A stretch of 63,971 nucleotides of DNA, the filler included, from Octopus bimaculoides (Eukaryota): NCBI RefSeq assembly GCF_001194135.2. It is 8 parts of 8 records of this genome, joined end to end, with 100 filler letters (N's around TTAATTAATTAA, not from the genome) between each part and the next. Parts side by side here need not be neighbours in the genome. Positions count along the whole stretch, not along the records: positions 11,628 to 20,437 come from NC_068988.1; 7 more parts are not named here. One strand, 5' to 3'. The translations under genes and the position numbers were made by a program. The notes below the pieces were generated by a model. It saw nothing but the letters and a program-made list of their open reading frames with translations. It searched no databases and had not been told where the DNA came from. This document shows positions 18,962-19,252 of this stretch, piece after piece. Numbering within the stretch: the first letter of the stretch is position 1; each line of letters begins with the position of its first letter.

Positions 18962-19252
18962 TTGTTGCGTAAACAAGTCTTGCATGCTGTCACTGTTAAT
19001 GGTATTAGAAATGTCTCCATATTTGGCCTCATCCACCAAGCTTTTGTGTTGATCCTTCAGTAACCTGAGTTCGTCCAGGCCGGCCAGGACAGCCTGGATC
19101 CTTGGTTTTAAACGTTCAGGTCTTTTCAATAGAGGAACTTTCAAACCGCCCGGCAGATCGTTCAGCGATCGACTCCGGGAACGAACCGGGTTACACAATC
19201 CGTTTCTAGTCGAGTTTGTCCCTGGCGCCGATGTCGACATGGTGCAGCTCAT
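18962..19252 (-). CDS. Candidate first coding exon of a Dapper/Dact-like protein
   Basis: ATG at 19252, 97 open codons, ending CAA CAA|gtgagt (phase 0, consensus donor). GC/CpG-rich relative to the flanks. RLKPRIQAVLAGLDELRLLKDQHKSLVDEA aligns by eye with the Dact N-terminal motif RxxAxLAGLxELxxLRxxQxxLV. Confidence 0.7.

Follow-up and report, generated by a model that had tools for sequence, protein, structure and literature searches.

An octopus coding exon from a mollusc-wide protein family with similarity to Dact

Introduction

Here we examined a stretch of 63,971 nucleotides (filler included) from the genome of Octopus bimaculoides (NCBI RefSeq assembly GCF_001194135.2). This stretch, the window, joins 8 parts of 8 records end to end, with 100 filler letters between each part and the next. 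One part, positions 11,628 to 20,437, comes from NC_068988.1 and is referred to as the piece. It carries a single small exon which an initial annotation, made from the sequence alone, had taken for the first exon of a Dapper/Dact-like gene. Dact proteins link Dishevelled, Vangl and the receptors of transforming growth factor beta (TGF-beta), and their chordate-specificity has been used to argue that vertebrates added regulators of planar cell polarity (PCP) (PMC4236578, PMC11897371). The survey of chordate-specificity which the initial annotation mentioned does exist (Schubert et al. 2014, PMC4236578), and its claim was repeated in 2025 (PMC11897371). Aplysia was the sole lophotrochozoan in the 2014 survey and was scored negative (PMC4236578). 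In the literature searched we found no report of a mollusc or protostome Dact. We report that the exon almost certainly belongs to a protein family shared by gastropods and bivalves, and that this family, which has no functional name, is probably a divergent homologue of Dact that lacks the leucine zipper.

Results

An intact and conserved coding exon

On the minus strand of the piece an open reading frame (ORF) of 97 sense codons runs from an ATG to a consensus splice donor without a stop or a frameshift (Table 1). The encoded peptide is MSCTMSTSAPGTNSTRNGLCNPVRSRSRSLNDLPGGLKVPLLKRPERLKPRIQAVLAGLDELRLLKDQHKSLVDEAKYGDISNTINSDSMQDLFTQQ; its last codon, CAA (Q97), occupies 18964-18962. The guanine plus cytosine (GC) content of the exon is 49%, against 39% for the whole piece. 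AlphaFold2 predicted one helix at amino acids (aa) 44-78, with a predicted local distance difference test (pLDDT) score >90 at aa 50-70; the remainder of the peptide was predicted to be disordered. Within the helix, LAGLDELRL fits the leucine-rich nuclear export signal pattern L-x2-L-x2-L-x-L and matches the export signal that Schubert et al. 2014 (PMC4236578) predicted for Dact motif 1. The 97-codon exon with its phase-0 GTGAGT donor, isolated amid repeats, and the RSRSRSL site at aa 24-30 were thus described correctly by the initial annotation, as the sequence and the ORF list bear out.

Table 1. Features of the locus, in positions of the window.
Feature	Position	Strand	Basis or content
Coding exon 1 of the mollusc Dact-like gene	18962..19252	-	97 codons, from ATG to last codon before donor; sequence and ORF list, orthologue, homologues, pN/pS
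Start codon ATG	19250..19252	-	First ATG downstream of an in-frame stop (ORF list)
Basic serine motif and LPG box, aa 24-45, RSRSRSLNDLPGGLKVPLLKRP	19118..19183	-	Alignment A3
Dact motif-1-like amphipathic helix, aa 45-76, PERLKPRIQAVLAGLDELRLLKDQHKSLVDEA	19025..19120	-	Pfam Dapper positions 2-27, hhalign, hmmsearch, BLASTP, AlphaFold2
5' splice donor GTGAGT, phase 0	18956..18961	-	Abuts codon CAA; same position and phase in L001, L003 and Haliotis asinina
Start of intron 1, to the edge of the piece	11628..18955	-	(AAT)n array, N gaps, retroelement debris, 188-nt direct repeat

Protein relatives were sought by word-indexed searches of 5.8 billion proteins and by exhaustive HMMER searches (phmmer) of 1.84 billion representative proteins at E<1e-3. 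The word-indexed search with the exon peptide returned one relative, P0001, which shows 63% identity across 95% of the query and already carries a weak precomputed Dapper match. This nearest relative of the window exon comes from a 1.2-kb contig, L001, on which it is a read-through ORF without annotation. Its frame opens at an ATG (position 251) after an in-frame TAA and closes at CAG/GTAGGT, which aligns with CAA/GTGAGT of the window (slashes mark the splice border). The donors after exon 1 are in phase 0 throughout, i.e. in L001, in a further contig, L003 (AAG/GTAAGC), and in Haliotis asinina (CAG/GTAGGC). The end of the exon is conserved as (D/E/N)L(F/L)xx(Q/K) in three taxa: QDLFTQQ in the window, QELFVKQ in L001 and ENLLQK in L003. 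These terminal residues are encoded at 18962-18985 (-) of the window, at 530-550 of L001 and at about 1055-1075 of L003; the preceding 15-60 residues vary in sequence and length.

A codon-by-codon comparison of the window exon with L001 gave a proportion of synonymous differences (pS) of about 0.95-1.0, i.e. saturation. The proportion of non-synonymous differences (pN) was 0.27 for the exon as a whole and 0.14 within its core (aa 19-78). Because non-synonymous difference is low while synonymous sites are saturated, purifying selection on the exon has been strong over a deep divergence. The phmmer search with the exon gave 31 matches. Of these, 29 are true homologues with a common N-terminal block; in several of them an isolated exon 1 is read through, a V (GTx) following the Q. 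Because of the GC contrast, the 29 homologues and the low pN against saturated pS, the reading frame is a genuine coding exon and not a chance ORF.

Two points came up alongside. The other two phmmer matches, P0002 and P0010, were rejected as spurious. Both are long proteins built of tandem repeats and not related to the family; 14 and 9 stretches of them were matched, which shows repeat-driven scores to be a hazard of searching a representative library. The L001 contig ends in an odd GC-rich segment (980-1178), rich in GCTAGCGG / GCCAGCGG-like words, which is probably a repeat or transposon.

A mollusc-wide family

A search of the 5.8 billion proteins with the family alignment returned at least six close gastropod matches. 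All relatives with names are molluscs, which fits the mollusc origin that the initial annotation had read from the DNA. The gastropods are Elysia marginata, E. chlorotica, Plakobranchus, Biomphalaria glabrata, B. pfeifferi, Bulinus, Haliotis asinina, H. cracherodii, H. rubra, Gigantopelta, Bradybaena, Lottia and Aplysia; the bivalves are Pinctada, Mytilus, Sinanodonta and Saccostrea. Examples are XP_067678156.1 of Haliotis asinina, LOC106058390 of Biomphalaria glabrata, LOC101858146 of Aplysia californica and CAC5422761.1 of Mytilus coruscus. Over the exon, named mollusc members are 42-57% identical to the window sequence. The window exon aligns with all members over aa 19-78. Together with the named but uncharacterized mollusc proteins it almost certainly forms one family, for which we use the label RSRSL-LPG or Dact-like.

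Nearly all named entries go by uncharacterized or hypothetical, and a precomputed Pfam domain is attached to none of them. Two bear other names, a CUPID-domain protein in Elysia marginata and a 'LIM domain-containing protein A-like' in Gigantopelta; both are automatic labels, and Pfam scans detected no such domain. The protein of the window exon is itself missing from the protein collection. For Aplysia californica one entry, XP_035829130.1 (P0021), is an annotated fragment of 129 aa which comprises exon 1 only.

We aligned 13 full-length members and the window exon (alignment A3) and found five conserved blocks within otherwise variable, serine-rich sequence. Block 1, RSRSLx(D/E)LPGx(L/I)RVPxLxR, is present in the window exon and is the most conserved of the family: L, P and G are invariant, and R, S, R and V nearly so. 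Block 2, also in the window exon, reads (E/D)R..ARLEA..AGL.EL.LL(R/K)E.Q..(L/M)V(E/D). The family can thus be defined by a box RSRSLx(D/E)LPGx(L/I)(R/K)VP(I/V/L)L followed by a helix RLEA..AGL.EL..L, and the window exon has both. Block 3 is S(T/S)SL..I.EE. Block 4, RRAS(I/F)QCE(A/T)V(L/I)T ... P(S/G)P(L/M/V)HAV..Q(Y/F), lies in the large downstream exon of the relatives. A scan of 17 relatives showed its form RRASIQCE(A/T)VLT...P(S/G)PLHAV..QY in 16, with P0027 and P0030 keeping just the core PxP(L/M/V)HAV. Block 5 is the C-terminal end, (R/K/L)(Q/E)T(A/E/D/S)(V/L), and follows the class I pattern of PDZ binding; it is carried by 12 of the 13 full-length members and also by P0042 to P0045; a PDZ-binding end had been named in the initial annotation as a feature to look for. 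The proteins comprise about 330 to 1350 aa and are mostly disordered and serine-rich.

The gene of Haliotis asinina consists of two coding exons, exon 1 for aa 1-109 and exon 2 for aa 110-710, separated by a 46-kb intron. In full-length relatives a single large exon thus follows exon 1 after one very long intron. The initial annotation had expected a second exon with a leucine zipper and SSGFYE. Neither feature was detected in the mollusc family, and in Haliotis the large exon follows exon 1 with no other exon in between; the two-exon gene explains why the search for a leucine-zipper exon was fruitless.

Similarity to Dact motif 1

Published motif 1, encoded by exon 1 of Dact1, reads ER..RTRER(L/Q)EATLAGL.EL..LR.RQE followed by LLV (Schubert et al. 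2014, PMC4236578, Additional file 9). Variants are ERLEASLAGLCELELL in anamniote Dact3, ERSRASERLEASMAGLAELELLRRRHE in lamprey dactB and, in amphioxus, a form including EELRLLRQRE (PMC4236578). The DACT1 and DACT2 strings which the initial annotation had quoted agree with this motif and with real DACT2 sequences. The window exon carries the motif as the helix listed in Table 1.

We compared the exon with the Pfam library (24,736 families). Dapper (PF15268) was the sole match (E=0.0019, 17.7 bits), aa 51-76 aligning with profile positions 2-27. Similarly, Dapper was the top match for each of 10 N-terminal fragments from the family (E 1.6e-5 to 0.016, 14.6-24.5 bits, profile positions 1-40). Vertebrate Dact1, Dact2 and Dact3a sequences were fetched for profile comparisons, and an alignment (A4) was made of 13 Dact1/2 proteins whose N-termini were intact. 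With hhalign the family matched A4 at motif 1 with a probability of 95.4% and E=2e-8. The N-terminal block alone reached a score of 66.2 (E=2.9e-9). Controls remained far below: 150 column shuffles of the Dact alignment scored 12.0 +/- 2.0 (maximum 19.7), and the reversed alignment, in which helical periodicity is kept, scored 19.8. Generic coiled-coil similarity to Dact's own zipper amounted to 21.7. The window exon alone was recognized as well (hhalign P=1.5e-5; hmmsearch 17.8 bits), and BLASTP aligned it with a shark DACT2-like protein over 30 residues without a gap (16/30 identities, E=8e-7). This demonstrated that the ungapped match to the Dact N-terminal motif proposed in the initial annotation is real and specific. 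That annotation had named mere coiled-coil similarity as an outcome which would speak against it, and with 66.2 compared to about 20 for coiled coil and controls this is not what was found.

Motif 4b, C-terminal end and gene structure

A second motif, 4b, is located in the large exon of Dact genes: PKYQCDLVSKNGND.YRYPSPLHAVAVQSP (PMC4236578). Full-length relatives of the window exon possess it within block 4; it lies beyond the part of the gene that the window covers. The motif-4b block alone aligned with A4 exactly on VY.YPSPLHAVA.Q (hhalign probability 93%, E=3.1e-7, score 46.1), and shuffle controls scored 10.5 +/- 1.8 (maximum 17.0). At a looser setting (mact 0.1) hhalign produced a single collinear alignment from motif 1 through motif 4b. 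A hidden Markov model (HMM) of vertebrate Dact gave secondary hmmsearch matches, with HMM positions 259-262 placed on the PxPLHAV site of 9 members; these matches to motif 4b are weak, 2-7 bits. In a BLASTP comparison of a sea-slug-like member with tarpon DACT1 the two best segments were motif 1 and motif 4b, in this order.

Other blocks were tried against A4 and rejected. Block 3, S(T/S)SL..I.EE, as an equivalent of DSRPSSGFYELSD gave E=0.35 with hhalign. A block (D/E)(D/E)GY(S/V/I)T, given also as (D/E)(D/E)GYSTCDS, as an equivalent of SDSEYSAEC of motif 11d gave E=0.43 and fell off motif 11.

At the C-terminus Dact proteins carry motif 11g, ...KLMTTV, with K(L/V)MTTV in Dact1-3 (PMC4236578); through this PDZ-binding motif Dact binds Dishevelled. 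The mollusc members end in the same class of PDZ-binding pattern (12/13) with a different sequence. The C-terminus of teleost Dact4, L-(Q/T)-RSRSLRDLGRKV (motif 11g; PMC4236578), resembles RSRSLNDLPGGLKV near the N-terminus of the mollusc protein (19163-19183 (-)), i.e. at the opposite protein end. This likeness may reflect the same kind of kinase site, or coincidence.

The coding part of dact is split into 3 exons in amphioxus (2 small and 1 large) and into 4 in vertebrates (3 small and 1 large) (PMC4236578). In Haliotis asinina we likewise found that a small 5' exon precedes a single large 3' exon, in which most of the protein is encoded.

Surroundings of the exon

The exon is flanked by simple repeats. 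A (CA)n array at 19261-19345 lies nine bases upstream of the ATG. Just within intron 1 an (AAT)n array starts (18886-18947), and an N gap (18507-18883) comes next. A further perfect (AAT)n array is located at 18249-18315; both contain about 21-22 units. A 188-nt direct repeat, 85% identical, is present at 17825-18012 and 18316-18503, the copies being 491 nt apart. The direct repeat and the (AAT)n arrays suggest that a segment derived from a transposon was locally duplicated in tandem beside the exon; the N gap falls within it. Retroelement debris is found further inside intron 1 at 17182-17517 (-) and 13972-14184 (+); it includes one ORF whose reverse-transcriptase tail is of the zinc-binding kind (Pfam zf-RVT, E=5e-5), and RVT_1 was matched faintly as well (E=0.16).

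Downstream of the donor the piece extends for another 7.3 kb, in which neither six-frame reading nor tblastn with 18 family proteins (E<=50) uncovered a second exon; exon 1 alone was found. This was expected because the first intron of the family is long (46 kb in Haliotis). The remainder of the gene is beyond the window.

Discussion

Our data point to a mollusc-wide family that is a divergent, zipper-less Dact homologue and not a Pfam-grade member; judged from sequence comparison we put the probability of this at about 70 to 75%. Homology is suggested because motif 1 and motif 4b each score far above controls, occur in the same order and are joined by a putative PDZ-binding tail. The correspondence with chordate Dact (Dact1-4, PF15268) extends to the places of these elements. 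Motif 1, (E/D)R..(A/E)RLEA..AGL.EL.LL(R/K)..Q..LV, is in exon 1. Motif 4b, ..QC(D/E).V(S/T)....(Y/F)PSPLHAV..Q, is in the large last exon. Both proteins are long, serine-rich and largely disordered, and both end in a sequence of class I PDZ-binding pattern, with T at -2 and V/L at 0. Of the Dact interpretation in the initial annotation the motif similarity stands, whereas full Dact membership, and hence a bilaterian origin, keeps the rank of a proposal.

The differences are considerable. The mollusc family has no detectable zipper (motifs 2a-c), DSRPSSGFY (2d/e) or motifs 5, 7-10 and 11a-f. The Haliotis gene has two coding exons versus three in amphioxus and four in vertebrates. The C-terminus of the family is (Q/E)T(A/E/D/S)(V/L) versus (L/V)MTTV in Dact. 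The box RSRSLxELPGxLRVP upstream of motif 1 is specific to this family, without an N-terminal counterpart in chordate Dact. Branchiostoma floridae dact, the sole reported non-vertebrate Dact, is very divergent too. There motif 1 is ARLMASEAAMEELRLLRQRE and motif 4b is YPYSPMHAI, both still recognizable; compared with vertebrates the gene has fewer exons, of which the last encodes the greater part of the protein. Amphioxus Dact and the mollusc family are, however, mirror images in what they retain: amphioxus has a 5x leucine zipper and DSRRSSGFF, both encoded by its exon 2, and has no PDZ end, and in molluscs this is reversed. The missing motifs are those located in the extra small exons of chordates, which fits exon gain in chordates or loss in molluscs. 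A gain or loss of the zipper and DSRPSSGFY exons is consistent with the data; it is no proof of homology.

A number of results weigh against homology with Dact. The Pfam check gave Dapper as the sole match of the exon, yet below the gathering score: 17.7 bits for the exon and 24.5 bits for the best family member compared with the required 27. Whole family proteins and central fragments, including those with motif 4b, had no Pfam Dapper match, in the latter case because the motif signal is too weak for the Pfam filters. The phmmer search with the exon did not retrieve a chordate Dact among the 1.84 billion proteins at E<1e-3. No family block aligned with the leucine zipper (motifs 2a-c), which extends from the end of exon 1 over exon 2 and is required for homo- and heterodimerisation, the sole alternative hhalign match having E=0.2. 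DSRPSSGFY(E/D)LSDG (motifs 2d/e), of which columns D150 to Y158 are invariant in A4, has no detectable counterpart in the mollusc family. The same is true for motif 11d/e, the serine- and acid-rich Vangl-binding region SDSEYSAEC...FGDSESS. The last 25 residues of the family showed no profile similarity to the Dact C-terminus beyond the three-residue PDZ pattern, and the PDZ-binding motif is absent from amphioxus Dact and from Dact4 (PMC4236578), of which the amphioxus absence counts here. What is shared is short, one element of about 30 residues and one of about 10-14, and resides in disordered proteins which are open to convergence of linear motifs. In addition, each hhalign E-value refers to a single comparison.

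From these findings the main alternative is drawn, that the family is real but a mollusc-specific (lophotrochozoan) orphan in which the helix, the PSPLHAV-type motif and the PDZ tail arose by convergence. Only two short blocks match, Dapper stays under its cut-off without a reciprocal match in the large protein search, DSRPSSGFY, the zipper and motif 11d were not found, and the strongest mollusc block has no chordate counterpart at its position. Convergence would nevertheless have to account for two independent blocks that exceed shuffled and reversed controls (66 versus at most 20, and 46 versus at most 17), for their Dact order and placement, exon 1 encoding motif 1 and the large last exon motif 4b, and for the PDZ-binding end. 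Dapper was also singled out from the whole Pfam library in all ten fragments, with coiled-coil similarity at a level of only about 20. We therefore consider an orphan family unlikely, though it deserves to be taken seriously.

Two further explanations carry much less weight. The octopus exon could be a relic, either a pseudogene or a lone exon whose remainder was lost or disrupted by repeats. The lack of a further exon in 7.3 kb, the flanking microsatellites and retroelement debris, and the missing database entry for the window protein would agree with this. The ORF is, however, intact from its ATG to a consensus donor, its core is strongly conserved against a species with saturated synonymous sites, and the first intron in this family is normally long, as judged from Haliotis; decay of the gene thus appears very improbable. 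Even less credible is an assignment to another known family, either CUPID-domain proteins (FRMD4/CCDC120-like) or a Dishevelled-binding adaptor such as LURAP1, which has a PDZ-binding tail of its own. UniRef A0AAV4J2Z0 of Elysia marginata (P0023) bears the name 'Cytohesin Ubiquitin Protein Inducing domain-containing protein', and PMC5677176 describes LURAP1 as a leucine-repeat adaptor that interacts with Dishevelled. Yet neither CUPID nor LURAP nor any other Pfam family was matched by whole proteins, N-terminal or central fragments, and Dapper remained the sole consistent match. The CUPID name of P0023 could not be reproduced: the whole protein and 200-aa pieces of it gave no Pfam match besides Dapper.

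If the family is homologous to Dact, its function may be sketched by analogy. The mollusc protein would be a disordered scaffold, cytoplasmic or shuttling. Its C-terminal T-x-V/L tail might dock in a PDZ domain, that of Dishevelled or of another PDZ protein, and the N-terminal helix could serve in self-association, in the binding of partners or in nuclear export. RSRSL, the basic serine box and a candidate site for basophilic kinases, may act as a regulatory phosphorylation switch. On a wider scale, Dact might not be a chordate invention. The motif-1 helix, QC(E/D)xV...PSPLHAV and the PDZ tail would be ancestral and would survive in molluscs in a protein that binds Dishevelled, and the zipper and SSGFY exons would have been inserted on the chordate stem. 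To this scenario we would give even odds.

The consequences would be several. Exon-1-only similarity to disordered scaffolds escapes standard annotation thresholds. If the homology is true, the origin of the Dact family moves to the bilaterian ancestor. Motif 1, motif 4b and the tail would then be its ancient core, and the zipper and SSGFY later additions. Dozens of 'uncharacterized' mollusc genes, including one in Aplysia, would acquire a testable function. The Dact layer of Wnt/PCP control would be ancestral and accessible in spiralian embryos.

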